Assembly (NCBI GenBank): GCA_977030845.1
Contig: OZ365113.1
Span: 20,832,001-20,896,000, forward strand
DNA length: 64,000 bases
Direction: 5' to 3'
Source: Fimbriosthenelais zetlandica
Taxonomy: Eukaryota
Shown piece after piece: positions 9,801 through 52,808 of this stretch. The first letter of the stretch is position 1; each line of letters begins with the position of its first letter. A program made the position numbers and the translations under genes. The notes under the pieces were generated by a model, which was given only the letters and a program-made list of their open reading frames with translations, ran no database searches and was not told where the DNA came from.

Positions 9801-10799
9801 TTCATTGCATGTATTTTTAAACGACATGAACATTGCTGGTTGCAATCATCAGCAATTAACAACTTTGAGTAATAGGAGTTGCACTTGATGAATCGATACA
9901 AATCCTATGAAGAAGGTTTTATACCGGGTATATATCCCTGACATCAAAGCCGTTAGCTAAATACATTCCCCACACCCATTGTCAAGAGGCAAGGGGAGAA
10001 ACTCGCAGAAGCAGAGGTTTTCTGTACTCCAGCAATGGTGCAAGTACACCTTCCATATAGAATTGCCCACATAATAGCATCACACCATACTCTTAATAGA
10101 GAGGCACCATGCAGCAAGGCCCAATCAATGAAGCTTCGACGAAGAGCGAGCATTCTATTATAGAAAAGAATCTAATTCAATTAAGTTATATTTTGCTCCC
10201 CATCAATTTCATGCACGAGAGCGCGCCATAATAGACAAGGGCCGAGTGGTAGGCCCTTAAAGAGGATGGGAAATTAATTTACTAATAGCGTTATAGCCCA
10301 GTATCTAATTAGTAGGAAAAGTTAATTATTTTTCCTCCAAGTTCTGCTTAAAAGGAAGGTCTGGAGCTGTGGCGCTACCATCCTGCCTAATGAATAGATT
10401 ATTCATAGAACATAACTAACTGAAAGTTGTTTTTCGGTCGGAGTGAGAATGAATTTTCCAAGTTGCGTCTGCAATATTCTATTTATAGATCCAACCTATA
10501 TGGTTAATATGTGAAGCTATCAGCCAACCAAAGGTCGTAATACGTGGTCAGAAAAAAGTGATATATGGACATGTAACAGTTCGCCAGAAGTCTATAGACA
10601 CTCAGACAGACATAGAAATATATATTACAAAAGAGATCAACAAAATGTGTAATTAATATCTCCCTCACAGTAAGAAATAAATGAGAAACCTGAGGACAAA
10701 GGAAGACGAGATGGCCCTCAACTATAACGACATTTTAAACCTGAAATAATGACTTTTTAATCCTGAAAATCCTGTCTACTAATTTTGAAATTATATAAG

Positions 10800-10917
10800 A
10801 TATTGGAAAACTACATTTTGTTAAGACTTTAATTGATCGGCGATTATAGGGGGTTTTAAAAAGGTAGTTTCATTTTTAAGGACATTTAAGTTTTTTTTAT
10901 GACTCGCGGGAAGCCTG
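10800..10917 (+). mobile_element. Possible 3' fragment of a CAGGGTTC-ended non-autonomous DNA element
   Basis: Ends ...ttttaaggacatttaag...gcgggaagcctg, resembling the right end (tttaaggac...gaaccctg) of the 46205-46430 element. No left TIR found; left boundary approximate. Confidence 0.35.
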
Positions 10918-12278
10918 TATGGAGGGATCAAGCGAGGGCTAGGTTTGACAATTATTCTCCACTCTAGCAGAATAATAAGACGACAGGCTATACATTATAA
11001 ATTAGCTGGGGGAGAACAAAGACTGCCTTCTCCTCTCGTGGAGCACGCTAATTGCCATTCAGTGGTGGACAGTTTGGAAACTGGCTAAATAAGAGCGGGG
11101 AATGAGGCGAGGTGGAGAGGTGGGTGGATGGTTGAGTGGGGTAGGTGGGAGATAAGTGACATCTATAGAGGACTAGAGGAGAGGCCTGTCTCTCCTGACA
11201 ACCTCTTGTCTGATTAACTCGAGGAAAAAGAGAAAAACAAAATAGGAAAAACATCCGAATGGACCAAATAGAGGTCTATTCTTGGCTACAGCTGAAGGTG
11301 AATTAACGGGAGGGCTTCACCAATATTATTCCATCAAGAGGTCTTCGCTTCTCCTTGCTCTTTTAGATGTAACAGATGGAATGAGTGGGTTACCAAAGCA
11401 AATGACCAATTTCGTTGGGATATCAGTGGAACAGTAGAAGACAAAGAAGAAAACGAAGACGAGGAATGGAAGGCGAAGAAGAGGAAGAAGATCTATGATG
11501 CCCAAACAAGATATGAAAAGAAAAAATGGAAGATATTACAGAGCAGCAAGCAAGCACAGGAGCCGGCAGCAGAAAAGTACATGACACAAAAACCCAGTGT
11601 CTTCCATAGAAAACAAAATCCCGAGGAAGAAAGTCAATCTAATACCCTTGCAGGTGCAGGGAGAAGAGGTGGTTTGCATGAAAAGAAAGGCCGCGGCAGA
11701 GATTAGGTGAAGGCCTGGAACACGCTCCCCGCACACAGAAACAGTATCCAAATCACATCAGGGAGAGCCTGGAGATTATCGCTGGATTTTCACCCAGGAT
11801 TAACACACCAAGTGGGTCTTATCAATTATGGCGGAAAACATCCATAACCAAGCCCTCGTCTTCCTCCCCCAGGCGCTCAGCCTGCCGCCACAGTTCCAGG
11901 ACCTTCTCTCTTTCTCTGTCTCTCCTCTCCCAATAATTAGATTCCAACTAGTTTTTCTTCCCATTTTATTCTCTCCCTCAAGCTTTTCAACTGGGATGGT
12001 GAAGTATTTTTTTGTTTATTTTTTGCAGGGAGACTCGCATCAAATGGACCAATTTTGTTATGATGAAGTGATTATTAGTGTGCATTGTAAAACACGGGTA
12101 TCATTAATGAGCTTCAAAAAGTAACCTGCAGGGAGGGAAATAGATTCTTGCTGTCCTATTTATTGTGAGTTAAGGATGGTTTTTTTACGCAATATGAATG
12201 TGACTACTCATTAAGAATATGTCACTTAGTAATTACCGCAAGATGTGCTCATTAACAAGGTTACTTATATATCTAACC

Positions 12279-12518
12279 AGAATCTTTGGACACTTTTCCT
12301 ATATTACTCAAATCATTCCTGAGAAAATTAATACTTTCATTAAACTACTTACATCAGTCCTGAAAAATTTAGTGCTTTCCTTAAACTACTTACGCGTCCT
12401 GTGAAAATTAGCACTTTTCTTAAACTATTTATATGAGTGCTGAGAAAATCAGCACTTTCCTTATACTACTTATATCAGTCCTGCGAAAATTAACACTTTT
12501 TCTATACTACTTCCCTTT
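12279..12518. repeat. Diverged ~41-bp minisatellite, 5 clear copies plus 1 degenerate copy
   Basis: Units start at 12318, 12359, 12398, 12439 and 12480; consensus approx. cctgagaaaattagcactttccttaaactacttatatcagt. Confidence 0.85.
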
Positions 12519-13294
12519 AAAATACAGATTAAGATATGTGAAAATTTCATTGAAGAATGCTCAAAGGTGTCTTCCTGTATCATAGTGGCGCTGGTGTTGC
12601 TATGTATAAACAAGATAAGCATTCAGTGGAGCATGTGATGGGTCAATATTGCCACAAGGAAGTCCACTCATGGCAGGTCCTCACCCGTTTTAAAGCCGCG
12701 GATGATGGATGGAGTGATGGGTAGAGGTGAATGATGGATAGGTTAGAAAATGTATTTTCCAAGTTAACTCCTCCACCTTGGGCAATCACAGGGCTATTTC
12801 TGACCAGGCAATCATAGGCTTTCTCTTCGAAGTAGGGAAGGGGGACTCAAAATCCACATCTCAGATGAGAGAAGGGAGTTCATAGGTAAATGTGGATCGG
12901 TCAAGTATAACTACATTTGGTACTGGGATGTATTGATTTCAATACCGCAATTCAATGCCAGGCCCAGAGGCACCACACTGCCCCCTATTGGATTTTAGCA
13001 GAGCTCATGATGGGAGATGATATAAGGCAGTTGCTTCCACCTAGTGTGGCCTCAAGCAACTATAGTAAACTGAATGGGTGACTGCTGTCCACATCTCGTG
13101 GCCATCCAGGGAACTAAACACCCCATAGAATTGCAATATTGAAGGAATCATTTTTCATGTAATGAAGGACAAATATCACAGGAATGATATTTCAACTGGA
13201 CTAGATATAGAACAGGTTCCTTATATAATTGAGAATATAAGAAGAAGACGAGAAAAGGAAAGGATGGTAAGTAAAGGAATGCAACTGCCATAAC

Positions 13295-25300: not shown

Positions 25301-27752
25301 TCGTCATAAAGCTAGTCTTCATGCAGGTAATAGTAGTAGTAGCACTAACTCGCTTAGGTTGCGTTTCACTGCTATATTTATAGAGATGCGTGGTAACATG
25401 AGACATCTCCGACCCACTGGATACTTTAGGTGTCACCCCAAGTCGACGAGCAAAATAGAATATTAATATTCCTCCATGCCACACTCTGTGTACTTGAGGC
25501 TTTGGATGACACAATCTGAGTGTGGGGGACTGTGTATGAGGGGTAGGATGGGGTCGATAAGCCACTTGGAACCTTTCATACCTTCCTGATTTGGGACTTT
25601 TCTATAGAGCTTTGGAGTTAGGTAGATAGAATCAGGATGGGTGGGCTTCTTCAATATAAGGTCTAGCATGAATGGATTCTATATGAGAATAATAAAATTC
25701 TAGACTTATCTGTCAATGATGGGGGAAAAAGAGAGACTGGGAGATGAAAGGTTGGTGCGTGGAAAGCTAACACTGAGATGAACAAAGGGCGAGGCTGTCA
25801 AACCGTGAGGAGCATACATGAGAGACTTTGGTACTAATCGTCACCATGCATTATGCAGATCTCGCTCTGTCATATTTGCAGGTTGACACTGATATCAGAA
25901 TCGGTCCATTATTTGTATGGCCCACGCACACAGTGGGAAAGAAAGGAGCTTCAATTTCTATTACAGAATTTCCCTGCTGTTTTGTTCTATCATCTATTGC
26001 TGTGGGAGCAGTTTGTGCTTGAATTTTGAATACAAAAATACTTCTTTTTCCCATTGAAGAAATCCATTTGACTTGATATTTCCCTGAAAACACATACACG
26101 CTTATGGCAACTTCGAAATGTTTCAGAAATAAGTTCTGCTTTTTCGAGGCAGCTTTCCCGTTGATTAAGCACCCATATGCTTGAGCAAATTTAATCTTCT
26201 TTCAGCTGAAAGGAAAATGACCACAGGAAAAGCTGCTGCCAATGAAAGGTTTCTGCAGCAAGGAAAAACAAGTTTTATCTTTAGAAAACTCAAGGTTTGA
26301 TCGCGATAATGCACTTGGCTGGACAAACCAAAAGAAGACAAACAAAGAAACGATCGTCAAATACTTAATTAGATTACAAATTCCAAAAGATGATCATCCA
26401 ATTTAAATCAAACAGCTTTTATGAAGCAGGAAAAAGCTCATAGTTCTACCAGTACATTTAAGAGTGGGAATTACCTGGTTTAATGGAATCTGGAAAGCTA
26501 TAAGTCCTAATGAAAAACAAGGAAATCACTTCCATTCCAAGTCACTAAAGCCGAAAATTAGAAGACTATATATACGTATTCAGACGATATCCCAGACCAA
26601 GCTAAATCATATGTCTATCCAGAATATGCAATATTGTCCTCCTGAATTTATACCAGATAATATTCCCGAACACAGTACCAAGCAAAAGCTGTCAATTCAT
26701 TCCCGAGGAACGCTTGAGCAATTTCAGAATGGTCCTTCCCACCTCCTAACTCATTGACTGCGGGGTGACTTTTATTAAATGAAGTGAGAGAGACGTGTTG
26801 CGTCAAAAAGCGAATCAAAAACCACATGGAGGGTCTTAAGGCAGCAGCAGGAGAGACGAGTGAGACAAAGTAGCTCATGAACTGTAAAGACCTTTATGAC
26901 CTGCAAATAGGATAGATGCGAGGCGCTCCTAGCCAGGTCTGTGAGCTGCTCAGCTGGCCCCACAAAGCTATAAACATGGCCGATCTCTACACAGATCACC
27001 ACACTCAACACATTAAGCCACAGGTAGTACTGATTGAAAATCTACTTAATGGAATTGGGCGTGGGTGGATCGGGGGCAGGCAGGCAGCAGGAGGGAGACG
27101 CAGGATAATCTAAATATATGAAGACTGTGATTTTGGCTGGCGCTAGTATAGTCACTTAGCCACTGGGTACACTGGTTTAACTGCAAGTGTAGTGCTCACA
27201 GAGACTGTCCATAAAAGACGGTTCAAAGGAGGGTACATGCAAACAAAAGGATATATATGAGTCCAGTTACCATACCAGAATGACAATCAGTGCCGAGAAT
27301 AACAATCATTTTCTCCGCCAGAGTAATATAAATGCCATAACCGACCTTTATATAGGCATATATATATATCCTGATCAACACATCGTGTGCTCCAGTTACT
27401 CTTTCACGATGATCTGATTTTCATGTGAACACCATCTTTCCATTGTTATTCTTCAATGGCATAAACCCAGATAGCAATTAATTTCTATACCAAATCAAAT
27501 TAAAATAGAGCAACTTCAGAGAGGAACCGATCACTGACATCCAGATAAAAGACATCATTTTTAATTTTTACACGTCATTCATTGTACTACTTTGCGTTGT
27601 ATATATGCCCATGCAATTAACTGGCAGTGGCTATCTATCTTCTATTCGTTGATATGAGCAGTTACTAATGTATCCCAAAGTCTGTTTGAGTTAGTGAGGA
27701 GGATGTGAGTGAAATAACTCGGTCCTAAGATAGCTCTGTCCACATGCAGTCA

Positions 27753-28050
27753 CACTCTAAAACTCTGGCGGCATTCAGCGGTCAATTTCTTTTTATAACT
27801 GGTCATATTCCAGTTATTCCTGGCAAGAATCAGCACATGTCGGATGCGTTTTGTGTCGCCATCAATCGGCGGTCACTGCCAGTAATATCTGGTCAAAGTC
27901 GTCCTTATGCGGTCAATGACAGGAGTAGCCATCATAATACGGTCATTGGCTATTTTTCCCTGGCAAGAATCAGCACATGCTGGATGCATATTGCATCGCC
28001 ATCAATCGGCGGTCACTACCAGTAATATCTGGTCAAAGTTTTCCATATGC
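27753..28050 (+). repeat. Left subterminal region: 8 YGGTCA motifs and a 140-bp-period duplication
   Basis: YGGTCA at 27779, 27800, 27870, 27890, 27910, 27940, 28010 and 28030; 27819-27910 repeated at 27959-28050. Confidence 0.9.
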
Positions 28051-28072
28051 GTGGGGTACCAAATGGCAGGAG

Positions 28073-28376
28073 TAGGCCTATCCTATAAGGGCTCAAGACC
28101 TAGGCCTATTATTTTTTAATCATAGGCCCATTTTAAAAAAAAAATTAGTTCCATGATAATTTGCAATCGTAGACCAATAAAAGGTCTATTATGGGGATAA
28201 AATTAGCTTGTAGTTCTAATCTCGGAGGGACGGGATTGCTTTCTTGGCGGGAATTTTTGTCACGTGGGAAGGCGCCATCTTTGTTTTCGTCGCCATCTTG
28301 GATATCTGGTACATAAACAACAGAGAGAGAGAGACAGACCAAAGGAAGGAAGAGAAGATTTTACACCATTTACGCG
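28073..28376 (+). promoter_or_regulatory. Putative element promoter and non-coding first exon
   Basis: TAGGCCTA palindromes (28073, 28101), CACGTG, two CGCCATCTTG (YY1-like) motifs, donor GCG|gtaatt at 28377, and a downstream acceptor ctttctctag at 28952. Confidence 0.4.
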
Positions 28377-28507
28377 GTAATTCCTTTATTTTCTGACATT
28401 ATGATGTTGCTTGACAATCACATTATAACAATGTGATAAATAGAATATCAGATCTGCTTCCAAAACATCACTGTTAGCACCTTGAGCCCGACCGATCGCT
28501 CCCTCGC

Positions 28508-28533
28508 TAATTCATTCATTCATTCATTCATTC
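28508..28533. repeat. (TTCA)n microsatellite
   Basis: aattcattcattcattcattcattcg. Confidence 0.85.
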
Positions 28534-29028
28534 GACATCATTATCGTACGTGCTCTCTGAGACTTAGGCTTAGCTTTTAATATAGTAGGGTGGAAGCACG
28601 AAAAGACACAGGTATTGGTAATTCAAGTCCCAATCATGTGAAAGAACATAGATCTATATGATATAATTATGTTTAGGCCTTTCTAATTTTAATATGGAAG
28701 AAAATCTCCCCCACACCCATTGCCCATGGGCCATGCGGTAAGACCACTGCCGGCTCCTGCTGGAGTGAAGGCGGCAGGGGAAATAGGCCTACCGAGTCTG
28801 AGCGGTCTCAGGCTACATCCTAGTAAAGGCCTATTATTACGATAGAGATTATCAGATAGACCTGCAATTAGCTTATAGGCATACTAGCCAATAATACTGG
28901 GATAGAATATATCTTTTTTAATATTATTAATATTCATTTTAACTTTCTCTAGGCGACCTGCAACATTAACGAATCCGTCGTCGGCTACCAGTTTATGACA
29001 TTACTTATATATCTGATAAGACATCAAA

Positions 29029-32017
29029 ATGTCAGAGGCCGGGACTCCCGATACCCGGTAAGTAATAAGTAAATTTCATGTATTGATTTTTAAGTTTCAT
29101 GGCAGTGGAAAAGTCGTTAAGATTATGGAACCTGTGTATAAACATTGTGGTACAGTCTAAAATCAAAAGGAATTTCAAACAATTATGGGCCAATAGTTAA
29201 AACGCTCTTCTTGAACACTCGCTCGACATCTTAATTTGATTTTCCCGGTCTTAACAAAATAGTCTGTATTATAATTAAATGTATTACAGGCCTCGTGTTG
29301 CACTTAAGTGCCATATCTGCAACACAGTCTTCTATGGAAATGGGACATATACCAAGCATGTTTCATACCATGGCCATGAAGTGGGATACAATTTCCCATG
29401 CCCATATCCCAACTGTGGGAAGCCTCACAACACCTACTCTGGTCTGCATACCCACGTCTATCGTTTTCATCCAGAGCCAAAAGACAACCAACTGAGACCC
29501 ATTGATCCATCAGATGCCACCTGTGATAGAAAGTTCAAGTGTCCAATTGATTTTTGTGGTTTAGAATTAAAGTCAGCAAAAGAATTTTTACTCCACATTC
29601 AATTCCACATTAAGGAAGGTCGCATTATGAGATGTCCCTTCAAAATTTGTAATGGAAAGGAATTTAGAAATTCGTCAACATTTAAGAGCCATGTCTCCAG
29701 ACAACATTCCCATTATGTGACTCAAGATTTTGAGCATCACAGCCTTGTCCATCCTGTGCCTACCAACAGTGATCAAAAAGTGACAGAGGACACAAATATA
29801 TTACATGATGATATAACCATGCCAAGGTCGGCCAACTTTGATGTTGGTGATTATCATGTTGCCGATGGCGGTACTGATGACACTGAATGTGTTGTGACTG
29901 ATGATCAACTAGCCTTACATATGGCCATGTCGTACATGAAGGCCGAAGGTAAACTTCTTGTCCCTGTATCAACTCTCCAGAGATTTATTGTAGATACAAC
30001 TGAATGTGTAAAGTTGGGGAACGAACAACTTGCAGTGACTATCCTTCGAATCACTAAAGATATACCAATGGATGATATCTCGCGTCAAAATCTACATGAT
30101 GCTTTGAAAAAGGGAAATAAAGTGTCACACCTTAATGACAAGCTCTTCAGTACAGACAAACTCAGGAAAAGACATTACCGTGAAAAGTTCAATTATGTGC
30201 CACCATTACAGCTTACAATTGGATCCAATGAAAATAGAGAACCTTGTCATGTTCACATGGTGCCTGTGAAAGACACTTTGCAAGTTGTATGTAAGAATCC
30301 ATCTTTTAAAAAATTGGCAAACACTCATGTCAACTCTTCAGGCTACCTTTCAGATGTGACAGATGGTGAAGTGTTCCGAAAGAAACATTCTGGAAGTACT
30401 GCTCCAGACTGCCTACATTTAATGTTGTACCAAGATTCGTTTGAGGTAGCGAACCCACTGGGTTCAGCAAGGACAAAGCATAAAATATATGCAGTGTATT
30501 TCAATATCTTAAATATTCCTCCAGAGCATCGTTCAACAATTGACAATCTCCAACTTGCCATACTTTGCAAAGAGGTCCATGTGAAGAGACTCGGCATAAA
30601 GACTGTGCTAAGGCCATTGATAGATGACCTCAAGGAGTTGGAAAACGATGGAATTACCATAGATGGGAAGAGATACAAGGTTTGCATTTGTTGTGTATCT
30701 GGTGATAATCTTGGCTCTCACCAAATTGGAGGTTATATTGAAAGTTTTAGCCATGGTTATGTGTGTCGATATTGTGATGTCAGACGTGAGGACTTCCTAC
30801 TAAATCATGAATTGATTGGCACGAGAAGAACTAAAGAGGAATATGACACTGACCTGGAAACTATAGAAAGAGAGCAGTGTGGCTGGTCAAGAGGTGTGAA
30901 AGAAGACTCCATATTAAATGAACTTGAAACTTTCCATGTCTGTGACCCTGGGCTTCCACCTTGTCTTGCTCATGATCTCTTTGAGGGTGTGGTAAACCAA
31001 GATGTATTTCTGATCATTGAAAATTTCGTTAAAAAGAAGAAGTATATTACATTTGAACAAATCAATCGAGAGATCAACCAATTTAAGTACAAAGGACAAG
31101 ATGCACATACCACCCCTGTAAATGTGAATGAGAGAGGTCGGAAGTTGGGAGGTCAAGCTCTACAGAACTTTGCTTTCTTGCGGTTTATGCCTTTTTTCTT
31201 ATTTGACAAAGTGCAGGATGAGAATGATGAAGTGTGGCTCATGTTGAACATGCTTCATGAGATAACTTTGATTGTGATGGCCCCTACAATTGCTGAAGGC
31301 CAACTTGGATATCTGTATCGTCTGGTACACCACTACCTGTCACTCAGAGTGAACCTGTTCCCTGAAACTCCTATCAAGCCAAAACATCATTACATGCTGC
31401 ATTATCCCGAACTGATTCATCAATTTGGCCCTCTTCCAAGGGTTTGGACCATGAGGTTTGAGTCCAAGCACTCTTATTTTAAGAATGTTGCACGAGGCAT
31501 AAAGAACTTCAAGAACCTGACGTCATCTTTAAGTAGCAAACACCAGCTACTGCAGGCACTAATACAAAGTGGAAAAATGTTCAGTAATGACCAAGTTGCT
31601 ACAGGTGAACGTATGTATCATGCCAGACATTTTTCGGAGCAAATGTCAAGTGCTATAGCCCAGGCTATCCCACAGTCACCAGAATGCCCTATAACCATAG
31701 TGGAAAGGGTGGAGTATAAGGGGATAACATACACAACTTCTTCCTGTGTTGTGTTGGCTGTTGAATTTGATGAAATCTCGCAGGTGGGAGAAATCATATG
31801 TCTGCTTAATGCAGGTAGCCAGTGTTACATTGTAGTCGAGATCCACAGTGTAAAGCCTTGTAAACCAACAATGCTTTTGAAATTGAACCCTTGCATACTA
31901 GGACTTGTCTGCTTCCAAATAGCAGAACTTAAAGAGCCTTGGCCCCTTCAGATGTATAGCATCGGCAATGACTCGTATCTGACTATGAAACATGTACCAC
32001 CACTTGTTGAAAATTAA
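29029..32017 (+). CDS. EnSpm/CACTA DDE transposase with four N-terminal C2H2 zinc fingers; join(29029-29057,29290-32017), 918 aa
   Basis: 912-codon ORF with LYQDSFEVANPLGS (D1), VSGDNLGSH (D2), CRYC, HDLFEG, HHYMLHY and WTMRFESKH (E). C2H2 fingers start at CHIC, CPYPNC, CPIDFC and CPFKIC. Upstream exon caaaATG...CG|gtaagt is phase-matched to acceptor tacag|G at 29290. Confidence 0.92.
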
Positions 32018-32285
32018 TATGATCAGTGGTATGCCATGAACTAAGAATGACTTGAAAATTGATATAATCAGTAGTGTGCCATGAACTATATGAATGACTT
32101 GCAAATTAATATGGTCAGTGATATGCCATGAACTATATGAATGACTTGAAAATTAATATGATCAGTGGTATGCCATGAACTAAGAATGACTTGAAAATTA
32201 ATATGATCAGTGGTATGCCATGAACTAAGAATGACTTGAAAATTAATATGATCAGTGATATGCCATGACCTATATGAATGACTTT
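32011..32285. repeat. Six-copy 45/47-bp tandem array overlapping the transposase stop codon
   Basis: Unit aaattaatatgatcagtggtatgccatgaacta(ag/tatg)aatgacttga; copies start at 32011, 32056, 32103, 32150, 32195 and 32240. Confidence 0.95.
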
Positions 32286-32439
32286 TATCATATATTAAAT
32301 GTGATCAAGAATGAATATTCAATTTTTGCTTCCTTGTTTTTACTCTCATCTGTCTCTTTCATAACCTTACATTTAGTATTCTATTCCCGAATATTCTGCT
32401 GATATTTTAGATACTTATGTTTCTCTCCTCTTGTTGTAG

Positions 32440-35316
32440 GTCAATGAATAATGAATTGCTCTGCCTGGTTCATTCTGTCCTGGGAGAGCTACCAAATGAG
32501 AAGATGGTCGCGCTGAAGCTATTATTTGAGAAATATGGTTGCCAGGAAGCAGGGGATGTAGACGTTGTCGATGAAGGCGACCTACAGAAAATTCTCAGCA
32601 TCGTTCATTCTCGACGACTGAAGACTGAGGCTAAGGGTAAAAAGATTTTTTTTATTTAAGTGATGTAATTATAGTTACCATTAATTATAGTGAATAATTG
32701 ACATGATCTGTTCATATCAATATGCCTGTCCATGTATCATTTCAGTGATCTACGGGATCCAGCAACAAAAGCGGATCGAGCGATTCCACTCTATGCAACT
32801 CAGTACCAACTCAGTACAAGCATCTCCCTCACCTGTGAGATTTGCTTCCCCTACTCTCACGGCATCCCCAACCACCCCAACCACCTCAACATCTCTATCG
32901 GTTAGGAGAACTCTCAACAGTGAGCCATCCACTATGTGGTACAACTGTTTTGTACCTGACATACCAGTGTACATAAGGACCAAACTTGAGGCCGATCGGC
33001 GGCTGGATGAATCGATGCGCAGGCAACTTGTGCAATGTGTCATTGACCAGGTTTTGATGGTAATTATTTGTGTTTGTTTTCCTTTAAACCCTAACCAAGT
33101 TATAACTATACTAGGATGGACTGCTTCGGCAATTTTCATAAGGATATTTATATTTCTAAAATTCATTCAAATTTATTATTTGCAGATCAATGAGAAGCCC
33201 AAGTCGTGCGAACTGAGGGCAATAGCAGCGGACATGACAGCGCAATATCCTATATTAATGGACAGGGTAAATGGGACAGTATTAGGGTCGGGTAAATGGT
33301 CCTTCTTTAAACAGTTAAGCAACAGGTATGATTCTGTGGCCCGGAGGAACCGACTGAAGAGTGACGGGAACACAAAAAAGAGACTCGCTGAACAGGATGA
33401 TAGCCCAGTGACTAGAAAGGCGCGAAAAATAAAAGCCAGTGACAGGTAAATTTAAACGTTTATAATCCGACTCTATCACAGATTAACATGTGTGTAATTC
33501 AGTTGATTTAATTGTCTCCATTTCTAAATCTAGTTATGGATGCATAAGGTGGCAAGACAACAGCCCACCGACTGGGGAAACTATGGAGACTCTGGAAGAG
33601 AAGAGAAAGGAGCTCTACAACAAGTACATCGAGTCAGGGGGCTCAGTGTTAACATCTGAGATGGCAGTACTGCAGGAAATCACATATTTCCTGCAGAGAA
33701 ATGAGATCATCGACGATGGTAAGGACTCTACTATATATTAATCTTATTAACACCATCGTTTGATTTTGTCCAGGTCTATTTTTTTTGTGAATAAGTACCT
33801 TTCTTTAATAATATTGCGAAAACTTATAATTACAGGTGCTACAAGTGCTATTGTCATCCAGCGATGGCCGACGCTATACACAGTGGACGGCTGCATACAC
33901 CATTGTGAGATGTTAACAGGCCAGGATTTTATCAAAAACACCATAACAGCTTATGATGACATGGGCAACAGCCTCCTAGACTTCGTCAAACGGTATGACA
34001 AGAAACCGAAGTCAAGAGACCTGATGTGAGTTTAACATTATGTATCATATATTACTCATAGATTACATTTAATTCTGGCACACTTATCCTAAAACGCGCA
34101 TTGTTTAGATGATTTATTATTATTAATATGCAAATTTTAAAAAAGTGATATTCCGATTGAAAAAAAGAAAAATTCATGCAAGAAATTAATGGTAATCCTC
34201 TCTATTCCAGTGATGAACTTTATGAAACAATGATCGCATCAGGAAAACGGGACGCTATCTACCCGGGTCTTTTGCTCCTTCTATGCTCCTGGTTTGGTGA
34301 GGATACTGGTGCAATTCTGATCCCTGGCAAGGTTTGTAGTATATTACTTTTTCCTTGATAAGCATCTTCTTTAAGGGATATGTACGTTTTAAATAATGAT
34401 AAGAGGATTATTTAACAAATTGCATTTTTCATTGTAATGATTTAGCCAATGTCTGTGATTAACTGTGCAAATTATTTATTGTTGTATTGCTAACACGTTC
34501 AATCAATCGACTTGCAGAAAACAGACAATGGCGACGACATGATTGGAAAACTTCCAGCCCACCCGTGTATTGTATACTGTGGTAGGTATTAATTTAATTT
34601 AATATTATGTAAACATGCAAATATTTTAAGATTTCTACTGATATTTGTTGGATACATCAATTTAAATTGACCACGTATGTTTTTGTTTACATTTAAATTG
34701 CATTCAAAAACTAATATTATACATTGAAATTGCAGGTTCATCCCCTCTTACCTCTACGAGGTACATGGTCGGAATTGACGGGCTGGTGGTAAACAACAGC
34801 GTCTTGTTGTTTCCAAGAGCCCTGGCCATGTTTATGGCTCTTCATTTTGTCATGAACGCCGAGTACGCAAAAGCAATACATATGACATTGGACTTGTGTC
34901 AGAGGTAGGTCTTTAAATTCTATAAGTAAACCATCTTTCCTACCCATATTTGCATTTGTGTGCACAGATTCTCAAACTCATTCTCATTCCCAAATCGGTC
35001 AATCATCTCATTTCACAACTCTTTTAGAAATAATTATGACATGTAACCTGTAAGCCATATCCATTCATTCCCATCACTTATTTCGATAGGTAAATCGATT
35101 TAAAAAAACGATTGTATAAATAAAACACTCGCAGTTCTATATGTCGCTACAAGACAAGCAATTAATGCTAAGTCTGTACCTTATATTTTCAGATTATTCA
35201 TGGGTGTGTCGCCTGACGTTGGGAACAAAACGACCACGAAGAAGGGGAAAATGGGAATACCGCAAAGGGTTGGGACATTCATTAGAAAATTTACGACATT
35301 TCAAGAACAAGCTTAA
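32440..35316 (+). CDS. CACTA accessory protein (SAM-like N-terminus, SAMD3-like); exons 32440-32636, 32746-33059, 33186-33445, 33534-33718, 33836-34025, 34211-34331, 34518-34581, 34736-34904, 35193-35316; 550 aa if spliced from 29029-29057
   Basis: All eight GT-AG introns join in phase with no stop until TAA at 35314-35316. Motifs SYGCIRWQ, TYFLQRNEI, QRWPTLY, LPAHPCIVYCG and FVMNAEY...TLDLCQRLFMGVSP. SAMD3 similarity is from recollection, not a search. Confidence 0.82.
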
Positions 35317-35934
35317 ATTATTTAAAGTGGGATACATAACTTTTTTTTATAAATCAGTCATTTCCTAGTCTTCCTCTTTTATATTTTTATTTGAACCAAA
35401 TGGTGTAAATTGAATGTGATATTTTAAAGTTATTATGAGAGTATACGTTTTAAGTTTTTAATTTTGAGACGAGCATTTTAAACCTCTGTGTCATTGGGGG
35501 TTTCATTCATACAGCTTTCTATAATTATTTTACTTAATTATCTCTCTTATTATTCATTTACCTATTATTATTTTATTATTTAATTGTGCCTATTTTACTG
35601 TTTTTTATTTCTAACAAATTTTTTTTATCATGTAATGAATTATTGGTGCTAATAGCAATATACATTATCTAATTATGTTATTTTATTCATTATGTCATTT
35701 TAAGTGTATTGATATAGACTAAATGTGATAATTAAAAGCGATTATGTGATTATCTGTTAGAACGGAATATCACAATTATTTCTACTTTTTAACTATTTTT
35801 ATTATGGGATTCATGTCATGCTAATTTCCTGAGTTTTTCTGAATAAAAGAAGTTTCGAATAAACATGATTTGATTCTTTTACTATTCTATCACATATTGG
35901 AAATTAAAAAAAATATATATAGCCCTATAATGTC

Positions 35935-36018
35935 ACCCGAACCCTGGCCCCGACCCCCGACCCCCGACCCCCGACCCCCGCGTCCCGTACCCTGCCCCCG
36001 ACCCCCGCCCCCACCCCT
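35935..36018. repeat. (CCCCGA)n C-rich tract, G-quadruplex-prone on the minus strand
   Basis: ccccgacccccgacccccgacccccgacccccg...cccccgacccccgcccccacccc. Confidence 0.9.
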
Positions 36019-36039
36019 GGACTGGAAGATTTGTTAATT

Positions 36040-36409
36040 GACGGTCAAATTCAACTATAAACGGTCAAATTAGATAAACGCTATATGGTCACCGACCAGA
36101 ATGTACTGGGAATGTACTCTGTAATAGACGGGAGTTTCCAGTATAAAACGGCAGTGTCTGCCATTATATAACGGTCGCGCGTCCAGTTTATGCTGGCGCT
36201 GTGTTCCAGTAAATACTGGCGCTGCTAGATGCGCGTCCAGTTTATGATGGCGCTGTGGTCCAGTAAATACTGGCGCCGCGTGACGCGTGACCGTCATTTG
36301 ATGGGAGGGGGTGAGGGGCTCCAGCTAATGCTGGTCAACCAGCCGGAGATTAGTTGCAGGTCAAATGACCGTCCAATGCTGGTCATTCGCGGATCTGGGT
36401 CTAAGAGTG
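36040..36409 (+). repeat. Right subterminal region: GGTCA/TGACC motifs in both orientations and a 54-bp duplication
   Basis: GGTCA motifs at 36042, 36062, 36086, 36332, 36358 and 36380; TGACCG at 36288 and 36366; gcgcgtccagtttatg(c/a)tggcgctgtg(t/g)tccagtaaatactggcgc occurs twice between ~36177 and ~36280. Confidence 0.85.
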
Positions 36410-39400
36410 CAGTCCTCTCAGTCATTTAGAGCCATAAATCACTGACCATTGTCTGGTGTGTCCATGGAGCAGAGACTAGTGGGTCTGTCATATAATAGTC
36501 CACCCCCGACCTCATAGTCAGGCATCAGGCCACCTCTTTGTATTAGATGCCCAGTGACCTTTGGATATCCTGTGACCTTTGCTCTTGAATGACCCTCGTT
36601 TAATGAGGCTATTGCGTGAATAGATAAGGACGGGACATGGATTCAACACCATAATGGGCGAGCAGGAGAGATAAGGGAGATGACAGAGTATATATGGCTA
36701 TTTCTGTCTCTAAAAGTAAAACTCTCTAGATAGCTCTGTTCACCGCAAAACTAATCTCGCACAGAAGCTTGCTCTATAAAGCATTAGGCTGGGGATGAGA
36801 AAGAAAGTTCTCATGCCAACTCTATGCTTAATCTCCATAGGATTACCATCAGTAACATTGCATCATATAGGAAAAGCATACAAAAGAAAATATGATAGGC
36901 TTTATCTTCCTTTAGTGAGGACCGAAGGCATAATAAAAGTACCATCACTAATCTTAATGTATCAAGGCAACTTTTAATAAGTATAGCATCCAACGCCCAC
37001 CTGTTGCGCTTTGTAAGACATCTCTATATTCCAGACAGCAGCATCTTAGTCTATTGTTTTCCTTCCTGCCATCAGAGGAGGTGTCAAGGAGTCGCTTAAT
37101 TTCCTCCGTCAATTCACCCGGATTACAATAGAAGGTATGAAAGTTGATCTGAATTGCAAATAGGCTGGCAAGGTCTATCACTCTCTCTCGCGCTCTTTTC
37201 ATATGAACATGTATACAATGTATATGAACACTTTCTCTTCAAAGCAAAGCAGAGGAAATGCCAGTCAATTGATGGTGATGGTGAAGCGGATGGAGGAGGA
37301 AGAGGTGGAGGGAAGATGAGGGGAGGAAAAGGAAGAACTCGTAGTAGTCAGAGAAAGAGAACTATGAATTATTCAGTTGGTTATCCAGTCACAACAGAAA
37401 GTGGGGTTTTCTCAGGCAAGCAGAATGAATTCGACTGATTAGTACAAGGCGTCTTTTCCATAATCCATTTATTCTAATAGAGCTTTGTTTGTCTTGAATC
37501 TTAAAACCATTCACCAAGACGGACAAGCTGTGATTCCCTGCACTCACCAGACATCGCAGCAAAGGTCACAAACATAAAAAGTAGAGTGCAGCATCCGTCA
37601 TCTGTATCATAGCACTTTGTATTAGTTTCATGATAAGTCAGATATTAATAATTCAAAAACTGTATTAGGTCTCTGTAAATTACAAATAATGTCTCCAAAC
37701 GTCCAATATTCAAGGTAGGACATTTTGGTTCATCACAGGGATATTCGTGCTCTGGGAGAAAACTTAAAGACAGTGAGAGCACCCAGCGTTGATGACTTAA
37801 GGCAGTAGCAATACAGGAATGACTGCTGCAGGCTGTGGACCTAATGAAATTAAAACGACCATGGTCATTCATCATGGGCGGCATGTCTGTCACGGTAGGT
37901 CAATCCGGTTTATGGCCCCATAGCGTAACCAGCCATTCAGTCAACAGCGACAAGACAAACGAGACGGCAGACAGCCCACTGTCACCAGCCATACAGCTTT
38001 AATTGATCTACACCCCAATCATACAGCCGCCATTTCATTAGCCCACATTATTGTCCCGTGCTTCTTTTGTTAGTAGGTAATCAAAATGGTGAATGTAATA
38101 GACGACGGTACGGTCATACGCCACCCCGACAACGATGTATCCTTTCCTTGTCCGGAAAGGTGAATTGATCAGAGTTTCCTTTATTGTCCCAGCGGTGATT
38201 TAGAAAAATCTAGATTCGACTCGGAGTATCTGTTCTCTCATGCAATAGTGAACAAAGCAATGTCAGGCTGTTCGGAATTGGCATAAAAAGCGGTCGTAAA
38301 ATGCCAGGTTCTATTTAATGGTAGCACTAAGCTGTGGTAGTCCACAGCGGAAATGGTAATTGTAACTAGGCATTTGTAATGAACAACAGGATGTTACACA
38401 ATATAAAACACTGATTGTTTAGTCTTATTTGGCCATTGCTTATCTTTTCAAAATCATTGTATCAATAATATCCAGCAATGTGAGTTTATGTTGGATAGTC
38501 TGCACCACTTGGTGAAGGCAGATCCAGCTACATTTTCCAAGCGAATCATGAACACTAATCAGATCATAAAATCACAAAGTCTGTCCTCTGGGGCTCAGCA
38601 AGCTGGTATTTATGTGGCTGGCCTTCACTCCATATGGAGATCCCCTATTATCGTCCAGAGCAGCTCCTCAAGAGCAACTCATTCAAGATTCAACAAGGCC
38701 TTCAGAAGACAAGTGCCGCCATCTTAACTGATAGTATGATCGTAAGATTAGCTCACAACAGCTGATAGTAGGAAGGTAAACATGTCATTGTCCAAGCTTC
38801 ATAATATAACGAGTTTAGCAAGGCTAGAATGGGTTTTGTATCAACATCTCATCGAATACAGTGTGAGGGCCTTTTTTTTTCTGGGGAGCCATGAAAAGAT
38901 CTGGCGACATTTCGACAGCCGCAGCCTTTTGTATACTGGTTGGTGGAAGTTGGTGGATTTTGTTAATCCAAATGACTAGGAATGCTGTGATCCATAGTTT
39001 TTTTTCTTTTATCCAGCCACAATTGTATTATGGAGGCTTCAGTATATACAAACTCTGGCTGGTGCCTTTCCTTTTAGACCATTTTTATTACGTTACCAAT
39101 CTAAAATATATATAGAATGCATTTCTAGATGCATTCGTACACAAGCTCCTCTGTCACAATACAAAGGCATGGCAAAATACAAAGAAGCTCAGAGATGTCA
39201 ATGCTGAGCTAAGGGCTTAAGGAGAATCAGCTCAGAGATTCTCAGGTGATCCCTTAATGGTTGACAGCCAAGTAGAACACAGATGTGAACCAGCAGCAAA
39301 CACAAAGAGGGGTCAAGCTTGGGTCAAGTTCCACCCACATGGACATATCTTACCAATACAGAACAACTGGCCTGGGATGGCTTGACCTGCAAATGAAACC

Positions 39401-45899: not shown

Positions 45900-46028
45900 T
45901 ATTTATCATTAGGATTTATCACATCTCCTAGTACTATACATCCTTGAAAAGCTCATAATCTGCTCTACACGAATCTGCAACTAACTGCAGACTTTAGACT
46001 TTAGACTCATTTCGTGAAAACATCTCAC
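45900..46028 (-). mobile_element. Truncated inverted copy of the 52411-52808 element family
   Basis: Reverse complement matches 52411-~52540 (gttgcagat.cgt.tagagcagattatgagctttt...atgtatagtac.aggagatgtga). Terminus ...aaaacatctcac is followed by ATAT. Confidence 0.8.
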
Positions 46029-46204
46029 ATATAGCCAGGTACTCAGTAAGCGGAGTATGACCAGGTGTGATGGTGTGACCAGGTGTGTGTGGTCAAGTCT
46101 GCTGCTCTTAGTGTAGACATAATTGGTCACCATACCCATTGTCTCTGACCAGCCTAGGCCCATTATCTACCGGCAGCACAAATTCAGGAAGGACAAAATA
46201 ACAA

Positions 46205-49400: not shown

Positions 49401-52400
49401 AGGGAATCAATATTTATGTCAACTGCCATACATAATTATATAGCACATGCAGCATTGCCATAGCTTCTGCCCATTTCAAACTTATCATGATTATTGCCGA
49501 GCTTCCAACCATTATTCTTTCCCTCCCTTTTCGATAAAAGCAATTTCTTATACAAGCTTTCGTGAAATTCCTTCCACAGTCTGATAGAGTTTCCAGTGCT
49601 GACTGAGATATGCAAAGGTTTCAAAGTTCCAAAGCAAATATCCGTCTCCACTTGCCTATGCTTTCTGAAGATCTGCAGGGAGAGGACAGGTACTTTTTTA
49701 TAAGCAAATAGAAACAGTTCTCGTGTCATGCGACTGTTAATCCATGCCTTTGTTTTGGCAAACAAGACAATGCGAAGGTTTTTAAGCTTCAGGCACTAAC
49801 ATAAAAAAAACATTTCCATTTATTTGGCAATTAAATGTATCAGTAGTTAAGCAGGGAATGGAAAAAAGTACAGCACATGGGAGAAGGGGAGAGAAAGGTA
49901 TGTTAAAGAATTAAATAGGTCATCTGTTCACCAGCAAAGTGTGCTAACGATATTAATTTAATCCGATGAACAGCATAAAAATAATATCATGATATTAATT
50001 ATCATGCTATTCGCCTGATTAAAACATTAAATGGATTATAATATTGTCAATTACTTGTGCTTCATACAGGTGGAAAATCAAATGGATGGAAAATTCTGAC
50101 GCTACATTGAAGGAATCATCTTCCTTACATTCGCTCTGTACCTACTAACAAAGCAGAGACTTTCTGGGTGCCCACATGGAACAGTCCCTGTGGGGTGAGA
50201 TGGTCATTTTTCATTCAGTGCCTCATGCCATGTGACCTTCTCTAAAGATCACTGACTGGATAATGGGTGTAGAATAGCTGTCCATCTTCATCCCCCAACA
50301 CTTCCAGTATCCCTAATTTGATCATGGAAATATTTCGCAATTAATTAAATATGTCTTCACACATTGACCAGAACACGAATTCTGGAGTATCTTTAAGGGT
50401 TTCTTTAAGCATTTCCTCCATTATAAAGAGTTAACCATTGATCCTTCAAATCCAAATAGATCAGTTTGTAATAATTAATTATGTATCATGACCTTTCAAT
50501 TCACCACAATGCATGGTCTTGACTGAGAAGTTTCTTATCAGCCAGATACTTTCTATCATTGGCCAGATACCCAAGCAGGTATAAGGGTAGCCCACCATTG
50601 ACCTGCTTCCAGGATGAGTGTCCATCCAGGTAATGTCCTCATGATGGACTCTCGTAACCAACTACATAGTCCTCCAGGGTGCCACCAACTCACCCCCGGA
50701 CCGCCATATCTCAGCATCTCACCGCCCATAACACTGGTGGAGAACCCGTTGAACCAGGATAGTGATTGCTCTACTGGGATCTAAATAAGGCCATTGGTCT
50801 TCGCCTAATGAAGGTGACATCAGGCAGCCGGGCTCTGGCCAAAAGACATGATCGCCAAAGCGGATATTACTGAGATGTGTCACTAGACTAAAAGAGACTA
50901 CTGGCCCGTGGCATTGTATTTATAGTAGCAAAGACAATGACGCGTTGTGGCTGTGCATGGGAAAATGGTGATGAACTGGGGGCACCAGCGTTTTCTGCAT
51001 ATTTTAACAGGTCACTTCAGATTATGAATACATTAGTATCCAGCAGGACTGGTTTGGAGGTGTTTATGTTTTGGGCTTGCATAAGGAATACTGGGATGAT
51101 TTCGCAAAGGAAATGAAAGAAAATAATAATTTCTCTGCAGCTTTTCAACTACCTACTGTTCCTTTGATGGGAAAGTAATACACAGGTGTATGTGCACCTG
51201 AAATATTAATGGCGGTAATAAGATGGGTCATATACAATGGGTCGTCCACGATAAAGCCCACGGCTGCACCTAATTAACTTAAAGATCAGTACATATTGAT
51301 TTCATATCAAACAACACAATCCCCGACTCCTAAAACGTATTTGATGTGAACCCCTTTATGTAGGACTAAAGGGACAGGATTCACCTTCAGCATTTTAGGT
51401 ATCATGTCAGTTCCAAATACGATGGCCTTAGTTGTAAGAATATTCCATCCACTCAATTGACCGTCACTGTAGGCAATGAACGAGTGGGAAAGGGAAACAG
51501 GGCCATTCAATTCCACAAATGGAATGAGTAAAAATGACTTGCCAAGTCCACAAGTAAAATGAGGAACATTAGGTTCTAAATCTGCGGAAGAAAGAATTTA
51601 CAATTTCTCTTCCTAAAGTTACCGATAGAAATGTCCATTTAAGTTAATTGAGATCAGGGAGTGAATAGCTGCAGTGCTACACTTGTGGGAACATTGAGCG
51701 CTGGAGGGATATGCTCATATATACAGCCTCAATGACATCCTCAAGCCTGAAAAGAGGAAGCAAATCAACTTGGAATTGGTCCTCAACAAATCGGGCTCTT
51801 CAGGCAGATTGCCATGTAATAGGCCATCTTTTCCGGTACCTAATATTCTCAGAAATGGAATAAAAATATAATATACTGGCTCGGATAGCGAGATGGTTTT
51901 GATTTGCCGAGAGAATAAGGGATAATGCAATGAGCTAGATGAGCCGGAGCATTGAGATTGACCCCTTTTTCTGGTCTAATATGATTTTCTATTGCCAATA
52001 TATTTGCACCTGCGTGCTGACATAATATTTTTCTAATAATTTATCAAATAGGCGTACGTTAATTTGCAGGACAATTTTTACGATGGGAAAACAATTTTAG
52101 TCACTTGTAGAACCAAATGTGCAATAAGATCTAGCGTCAGGACAAAACATGAATATTCAAATTGAGGATGGCATCATAACTTGAGGAGAATCAGTAAGCA
52201 ATCAAGTAATCTTTCCCTTTTGAATACAAATTGCATTGGCTACCATGTGCCGGCGTTGGGTGAGGAGTGTTCCCTGAATTCTAGTCATACTTCCACATGA
52301 CTAGCGACAAACAACCTTTCATGCCTTGAAGCAAAGTTTGCCTGATGGAAGTCAATCAGGCTCATGTTATCCTCCATGAGGCCTTTATCTGGCAGATTCC

Positions 52401-52410
52401 CAAGGTATAT

Positions 52411-52808
52411 GTGATGTGTTTTCACGAAATGAGTCTAAAGTCGCAAAAATGGATTTCGAGTGGTTGCAGATGCGTATAGAGCAGATTATGAGCTTTTTAA
52501 TTATGTATAGTACAAGGAGATGTGAAAAATACTGAAAAAATTTCAAAGAATAAAAGTAGTGACTGCAGAAACCAGAGAAAATACCCATTTCAGACAATTC
52601 TCTGTCCAACTGGATGAAAACTTAAAGGGACAACACACACAAAGTAGAACGTTTCTCAATTCCAGTCACAGAAGTAGTAAATATATCAAATACTTGCTTT
52701 TATTGCGAAAATGCTGAAAGAAATAAGTGGTTTGTTTCAAACGCTTTCAGGCCTGTAGCTCTGAATGGCCCTGTGCGACTTTAGACTCATTTCATGAAAA
52801 CACATCCG
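52411..52808. mobile_element. 398-bp MITE with ~33-bp TIRs flanked by ATAT (Sola1-like AWWT target, inferred)
   Basis: gatgtgttttcacgaaatgagtctaaagtcgca versus tgcgactttagactcatttcatgaaaacacatc (1 mismatch); ATAT at 52407-52410 and 52809-52812. Confidence 0.85.

Follow-up and report, generated by a model that had tools for sequence, protein, structure and literature searches.

PIF/Harbinger DNA transposons express their proteins from two separate genes, which have separate promoters and are not known to share an exon. In maize En/Spm, a single promoter yields both the tnpA and the tnpD transcript through alternative splicing (Masson et al. 1989, in the summary given by PMC1636069), a splicing that a sequence-only reading of the present locus had also cited, and the CACTA element SmTRC1 of Schistosoma mansoni has alternatively spliced forms with and without the Transposase_21 part, which its authors likened to Spm TnpA-D (PMC1636069). 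Here, a 64,000-nucleotide (nt) stretch of Fimbriosthenelais zetlandica DNA (assembly GCA_977030845.1, contig OZ365113.1, positions 20,832,001 to 20,896,000), hereafter the window, was analysed, in which positions ~27753-36409 appear to form an intact CACTA/EnSpm-type (CMC superfamily) DNA transposon of 8.7 kilobases (kb; span provisional). The element is predicted to hold two genes, one for a transposase and one for a SAMD3-like accessory protein, and all of its features described below are numbered from the first letter of the window and lie on the + strand. No description of an animal two-gene EnSpm architecture, or of a link between SAMD3 and a transposon, was found in the literature searched.

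The explanation preferred here, to which we give an even chance for this element, is one transcription unit with a promoter near the left end, whose leader is spliced alternatively to acceptor 29290 or acceptor 32440. The leader in question is a small exon, probably 28952-29057, that would be joined on its 5' side to a non-coding first exon and on its 3' side to one of these two acceptors. Joining to 29290 would produce a messenger RNA (mRNA) whose first long open reading frame (ORF) encodes a zinc-finger transposase of 918 amino acids (aa), and joining to 32440 would skip the transposase exon and produce the mRNA of the nine-exon SAMD3-like accessory protein. In the window copy, the leader ATG at 29029 would be the only usable transposase start and would also be in frame with the accessory gene, whose product would be 550 aa long from the leader ATG or 539 aa long from the conserved ATG 32444. 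At the family level, comparative sequence makes splicing of a common leader over the transposase likely. For the window copy, the use of junction 29057>32440 stands at about evens, and from the sequence we infer both this use and a splice choice that would set the ratio of the two proteins. The fullest form of the proposal (a leader exon holding the sole transposase start, spliced either to the transposase or over it to the accessory gene; an N-terminal decapeptide shared by both proteins; a ratio set by splice choice or exon skipping; an En/Spm-like strategy kept across kingdoms; and SAMD3 as a domesticated partner) is put forward tentatively, with a probability somewhat under one half.

The sequence-only reading had placed a tiny coding exon at 29029-29057 that ends in phase 2, and these coordinates proved exact. 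ATG 29029, with an A at -3, opens a 29-nt coding exon that ends in CG immediately before a perfect GTAAGT at 29058 (CG/GTAAGT, the slash marking the splice site), and the 1.5 kb before the transposase ORF contains only two GTRAG donors, at 28738 and 29058. Because a good acceptor (ctctag/G, 28951/28952) precedes the ATG exon, this exon (28952-29057, with 29029-29057 as its coding part) is probably the second one, behind a non-coding first exon that would end at 28377. When the sequence is read for such features, segment 28230-28377 may be interpreted as a promoter with this non-coding first exon, whose putative donor at 28377 is GCG/GTAATT. This segment has no ATG, and positions 28230-28320 contain TTGGCGGGAA, CACGTG and two GCCATCTT, of which we take TTGGCGGGAA to be E2F-like and GCCATCTT to be YY1-like. 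The predicted intron that separates leader and transposase exons (29058-29289, GTAAGT...ttacag) is 232 nt long; if it were retained, the leader ORF would stop at TAA 29059-29061 and several upstream ATGs would precede the transposase ORF.

Both acceptors named in the sequence-only reading keep the leader frame, giving open products of 918 and 550 aa. The first of them, cag/G at 29289/29290, carries this frame into ORF 29290-32017, which has 908 codons past the acceptor in the ORF list (918 aa with the leader) and encodes N-terminal C2H2 fingers. No in-frame ATG follows for ~115 codons, and the sole other candidate start, ATG 29279, lies inside the pyrimidine tract of the acceptor, directly after a TAA and with a T at -3; because of this long ATG-free stretch and the poor context of ATG 29279, the leader ATG 29029 is the most plausible transposase start, as far as sequence context can tell. 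The match of the ORF to the Pfam family Transposase_21 (PF02992, Tnp2 type) was weak (E=3.9e-5, 23.4 bits, under the cut-off of 28.6), and a PF02992 match is precomputed for three of its homologues. In total, 111 transposase homologues of ~880-925 aa were found in organisms such as sea urchin, nemertean, sea cucumber, Hydra, fish and insects, the best of which shares 40% identity across 99% of the length.

No acceptor of its type in the window has a better pyrimidine tract than the second one, tag/G at 32439/32440, whose crude score is equalled by 0.7% of 25-nt background windows. It opens the first of nine predicted accessory exons, 32440-32636, which contains the gene's own ATG at 32444 and a SAM-like N-terminal domain. 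The others are at 32746-33059, 33186-33445, 33534-33718, 33836-34025, 34211-34331, 34518-34581, 34736-34904 and 35193-35316 (stop TAA at 35314-35316). An open frame and the family alignment point to all nine, together with the strong acceptor for exon 1 and GT-AG boundaries for the remaining eight. Joined to the 29-nt exon, they make a 10-exon open frame of 550 aa in which all nine junctions are GT-AG, and starting at ATG 32444 would leave 539 aa. The in-frame arrangement makes functional sense, because an out-of-frame accessory junction would cost translation once the ATG sits in a shared leader. All nine exons align along the Asterias, sea-urchin, fish and tick members of the family, and blastp gave 25-30% identity across nearly the full length.

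The order transposase, then accessory gene, on one strand recurs in seven relatives, namely a sea urchin (L001), an environmental contig (L002), an abalone (L007), a crinoid (L008), a grouper (L009), a sea spider (L010) and a nemertean (L011), and because of this recurrence the accessory gene is regarded as a gene of the element and not of the host. One gene model is that of the crinoid Antedon mediterranea (RefSeq). Here, residue 1 of accessory isoform P0285 is encoded by ATG 10001-10003 of the locus, with a gtaatt donor immediately after it, residues 2-84 are encoded at 12934-13182, 2.9 kb downstream of the ATG exon, and the gene of the 783-aa transposase (10042-12393) is nested in the intron between residues 1 and 2, so that the accessory ATG lies 41 nt upstream of the transposase start. 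With an in-frame ATG available just two codons on, purely ab initio prediction is unlikely to have reached back 2.9 kb for an exon of 3 nt, and transcript alignments probably underlie this model.

Two further sets of models use the same acceptor position. In the loach Misgurnus anguillicaudatus (LOC129416852, isoform X2, P0138), a zinc-finger N-terminus of ~150 aa, 50% identical to transposase P0018, is joined in frame to a complete accessory protein just before the accessory Met, which suggests that the accessory protein could be made with the DNA-binding part of the transposase in some lineages; isoform X1 of this gene was looked for and not recovered. In sea-cucumber models P0038/P0134, the transposase (from residue 715) is joined in frame to the accessory protein, likewise just before the accessory Met. 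An in-phase internal donor in the transposase exon of the window, which could yield a loach-like zinc-finger-plus-accessory isoform, was sought and rejected, as the only two GTRAG sites there are both in phase 1. The two genes are separated by 15 nt in abalone and by 32 nt in sea spider, and spacers of this length leave no room for a separate accessory promoter. In addition, the accessory gene on two 1.7-kb intron-free contigs (L005/L006) has an additional ATG in frame, 13 codons upstream of the conserved Met, and in the relatives an acceptor lies a few nt ahead of the start of the transposase. At the family level, the interpretation that the first coding exon of the accessory gene behaves as an internal exon, into which upstream exons would be spliced across the transposase ORF, is supported by these comparisons. 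The nesting of the transposase in intron 1 of the accessory gene, claimed earlier for the window copy, is supported in the same sense, through the Antedon, loach and sea-cucumber models and the two short spacers; for the window copy itself no transcript was found.

Several lines of the comparison gave negative results. A short leader peptide common to the match sets of transposase and accessory protein was not found, and the same comparison revealed the loach fusion. Logan contigs L003/L004 (sea urchin) were considered as complementary DNAs and rejected, since the leader intron is still present in them and the 277 nt by which they differ from L001 are not bounded by GT-AG; they are genomic copies. 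This difference corresponds to a 277-nt insertion in the 5' region of L001 (9398-9674), absent from the otherwise 99% identical L003/L004, and is not an intron.

A number of observations weigh against a leader shared by both genes of the window copy. No transcripts, proteins or expressed sequence tags (ESTs) of the same species were found, the best matches being 40% identical for the transposase and ~28% for the accessory protein, and the RefSeq models of the relatives are computational, with RNA support that is not visible. The probable exon that carries ATG 29029 also has an earlier ATG, at 28995, in another frame. Given the transposase junction, the phase match of the second acceptor is by itself a 1-in-3 event. 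The conservation of phase matching in the family, which the sequence-only reading had named as a check, was contradicted by the two relatives compared: the acceptors of transposase and accessory gene differ in phase in both the sea urchin L001 (0 vs 1) and the environmental contig L002 (1 vs 2), in each of which both ORFs have their own ATG a few nt past the acceptor. The candidate leader exon of L001 (9806-9906) lacks an ATG, and the leader ATG and transposase ATG of Antedon are in different frames. Furthermore, the crude acceptor score is ordinary in most relatives (p 0.17-0.47; ~0.013 by Fisher's method, calculated by hand over seven accessory sites), and because of these weak scores we base the comparison on annotated models and spacer lengths in place of motif scores. 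As the transposase of the relatives has its own ATG past the acceptor and the acceptor phases differ, a coding exon serving both proteins appears to be particular to the window copy and not a conserved feature; of the earlier claim that one exon feeds two proteins, the compatibility of the reading frames in the window stood, whereas none of the relatives shows one coding exon for both.

Some of these observations would be expected if the element instead carried two separate genes, with an accessory promoter in the 422-nt AT-rich spacer (32018-32439), a start at ATG 32444 or 32417, an AG at 32439 that is unused or serves a local leader, and a phase match due to chance. The accessory gene's own ATG, 4 nt past the acceptor, is conserved across the family, and the annotations of sea urchin, abalone, grouper and sea spider all treat the accessory gene as a separate gene whose coding sequence begins there. 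The spacer could also house a promoter of its own, as approximately six tandem copies of a ~47-nt unit (32007-32284, beginning at the transposase stop and occupying most of the spacer), which could be regulatory, were detected by a repeat search; no counterpart of them was seen in L001 or L002. However, acceptor 32440 is the strongest-scoring feature of its type in the window, the abalone and sea spider spacers could not hold a promoter, and the Antedon model splices across the transposase, with the loach and sea-cucumber models using the same acceptor position. With this evidence on both sides, two separate genes are considered improbable. A silent copy, in which the tiny exon would be a chance combination of ATG and donor and the transposase, if made at all, would start at ATG 29279, is a still weaker candidate and seems very improbable to us. 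Such a copy would be in keeping with the single occurrence of the element in the window, its provisional ends and its unclear target-site duplication, and ATG 29279 does open the transposase ORF; but the two ORFs are intact, as are 18 splice sites, ATG 29279 sits in a poor context within the acceptor tract and after several upstream ATGs, and the relatives' acceptor lies a few nt before their transposase start.

A further possibility retains one transcription unit and changes the way in which it is processed. The transposase exon could be a cassette exon with a donor at ~32028/32029 spliced to 32440, so that a long mRNA would contain both ORFs and a short one would skip the transposase, the leader ATG exon being optional in the short form. 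Donor-like sites are present at or after the transposase stop in L002 (TAG/GTAATG, exactly at the stop), in the nemertean L011 (GAG/GTAACT, 11 nt past it), in the window (GTG/GTATGC, also 11 nt past it) and in L001 (TAG/GTATGG, 63 nt past it). These sites fit a cassette exon that can be skipped and a long transcript with two ORFs, like that of maize tnpD, in which both ORFs stand in tandem (PMC1636069). In abalone and sea spider, moreover, the candidate accessory acceptor is at or near the transposase stop, too close for a cleavage and polyadenylation site to fit between the genes. On the other side, the window donor is weak and recurs inside the 47-nt repeat unit (three copies carry the donor-like motif GGTATGCC, the first at 32029), GTA motifs are frequent by chance, and the short form would still include junction 29057>32440. 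Cassette-exon skipping as a replacement for the preferred explanation is rated unlikely. The acceptor/polyadenylation switch suggested in the sequence-only reading is also unlikely. Its hexamer, an ATTAAA at 32294-32299 and a candidate transposase polyadenylation signal, is present as claimed; the switch is unsupported because this hexamer alone stands behind it and chance would supply one (~1.5 such hexamers are expected in 420 nt of AT-rich spacer), and the post-stop donor-like sites fit exon skipping instead.

The partner encoded with the transposase, whichever way it is expressed, belongs to a large animal family. No Pfam family was matched by the accessory protein in a Pfam search. Exon pieces and relatives served as queries against large databases, and a profile search with the accessory family retrieved 3,968 clusters at 50% identity. 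In the Atlas, the nearest named cluster to the family is SAMD3-like. A fold comparison was performed with the predicted model of the family member P0114 (predicted local distance difference test score, pLDDT, 85.5) in place of the window's own accessory protein: in Foldseek, its residues 18-509 aligned with residues 2-518 of SAMD3 models (human Q8N6K7, mouse Q8C4H2; E 3.5e-14, probability 1.00) at a sequence identity of ~15%. Among solved structures (PDB), no match was found to the accessory profile or to the P0114 fold. Vertebrate SAMD3 shares the N-terminal SAM-like domain, and its fold matches the P0114 model over nearly the full length; to our knowledge, SAMD3 is a host gene without an adjoining transposase. 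On the basis of these models, vertebrate SAMD3 may be a domesticated transposon gene.

The extent of the element was judged from its terminal and subterminal repeats. Short terminal inverted repeats of CACT type are present, with CACTCTAAAAC at 27753-27763 and GTCTAAGAGTG at 36399-36409, the reverse complement of the latter, CACTCTTAGAC, matching the left repeat at 9/11 positions; since the element is a single copy within the window, both ends are provisional. The flanks TCA and CAG have a 2-base-pair (bp) CA in common, which chance alone would give in 1 of 16 cases, as a candidate target-site duplication. Subterminal repeat arrays occur at both ends, GGTCA-containing motifs being enriched approximately sevenfold in 27751-28250 and 36001-36500. 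The left array (27764-28060) is GGTCA-rich (8 motifs in 500 nt of the left arm, against a window average of 0.56 per 250 nt) and includes two 111-nt repeats (family D2/D4, at 27801-27911 and 27941-28051), and the right one (36040-36398) contains GGTCA/TGACC motifs, identified by motif counts, and two 54-nt repeats at 36177-36284. Two AATAAA signals found by motif search at 35842-35863 are likely to mark the 3' end of the transcription unit. A C-rich CCCCGA-type microsatellite (35936-36019) lies between the 3' untranslated region of the accessory gene and the right subterminal repeats. Outside the provisional right end, three further TGACC motifs (GGTCA on the minus strand) are found at 36500-36600, given which the element may extend farther right or adjoin an older fragment; local alignment of the element ends revealed no convincing better terminal repeats farther right. 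Elsewhere in the window, a long inverted repeat pair at 45911-46044 and 52395-52533 (71 and 48 nt, 85-89% complementary, ~6.4 kb apart) probably represents a further terminal-inverted-repeat element.

Should the junctions prove real, a CACTA-superfamily element of an animal would follow the logic of McClintock's Spm, with one promoter and leader and a splice choice between transposase and partner, and the ratio of the two proteins would be a simple control point for transposition. The element would also provide a functional setting for the SAMD3-like family, which comprises thousands of animal clusters and a host gene in vertebrates, and splicing across two genes would explain the odd nested or fused gene models found at such loci in public annotations.

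Among the known systems, PIF/Harbinger is likewise a DNA transposon in which the transposase is accompanied by a second protein, of Myb/SANT type, that the element needs or carries (PMC12730594); it belongs to a different superfamily. The Antedon element encodes both protein families of the window element, in identical order, and a tiny first coding exon ahead of the transposase is spliced in frame to the accessory gene 6 nt before the accessory gene's own ATG. Unlike the window exon, however, the Antedon exon supplies the ATG only, and the transposase has its own, out-of-frame ATG 38 nt past the donor, so that the leader ATG does not feed both proteins. SmTRC1, which is 4.5 kb long, differs in having one ORF of 1,683 bp and no SAMD3-like second gene, and its isoforms were demonstrated by ESTs and reverse transcription-polymerase chain reaction (PMC1636069), whereas the window element is known from sequence alone. 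Maize En/Spm resembles the window element in several features: a Tnp2/Transposase_21-type transposase (putative in the window), CACT termini and subterminal repeats, a large transposase ORF in the first long intron behind a common leader (here predicted), and a multi-exon accessory gene downstream. Yet the accessory protein of the window is SAMD3-like and unrelated to TnpA, a test of homology to TnpA having been negative; its transposase is encoded in one exon; and its leader would be coding, in frame for both proteins. The expression strategy itself is thus already known from maize Spm and SmTRC1, and what the window element would add is a SAMD3-like partner and a leader that is coding and in frame for both proteins.

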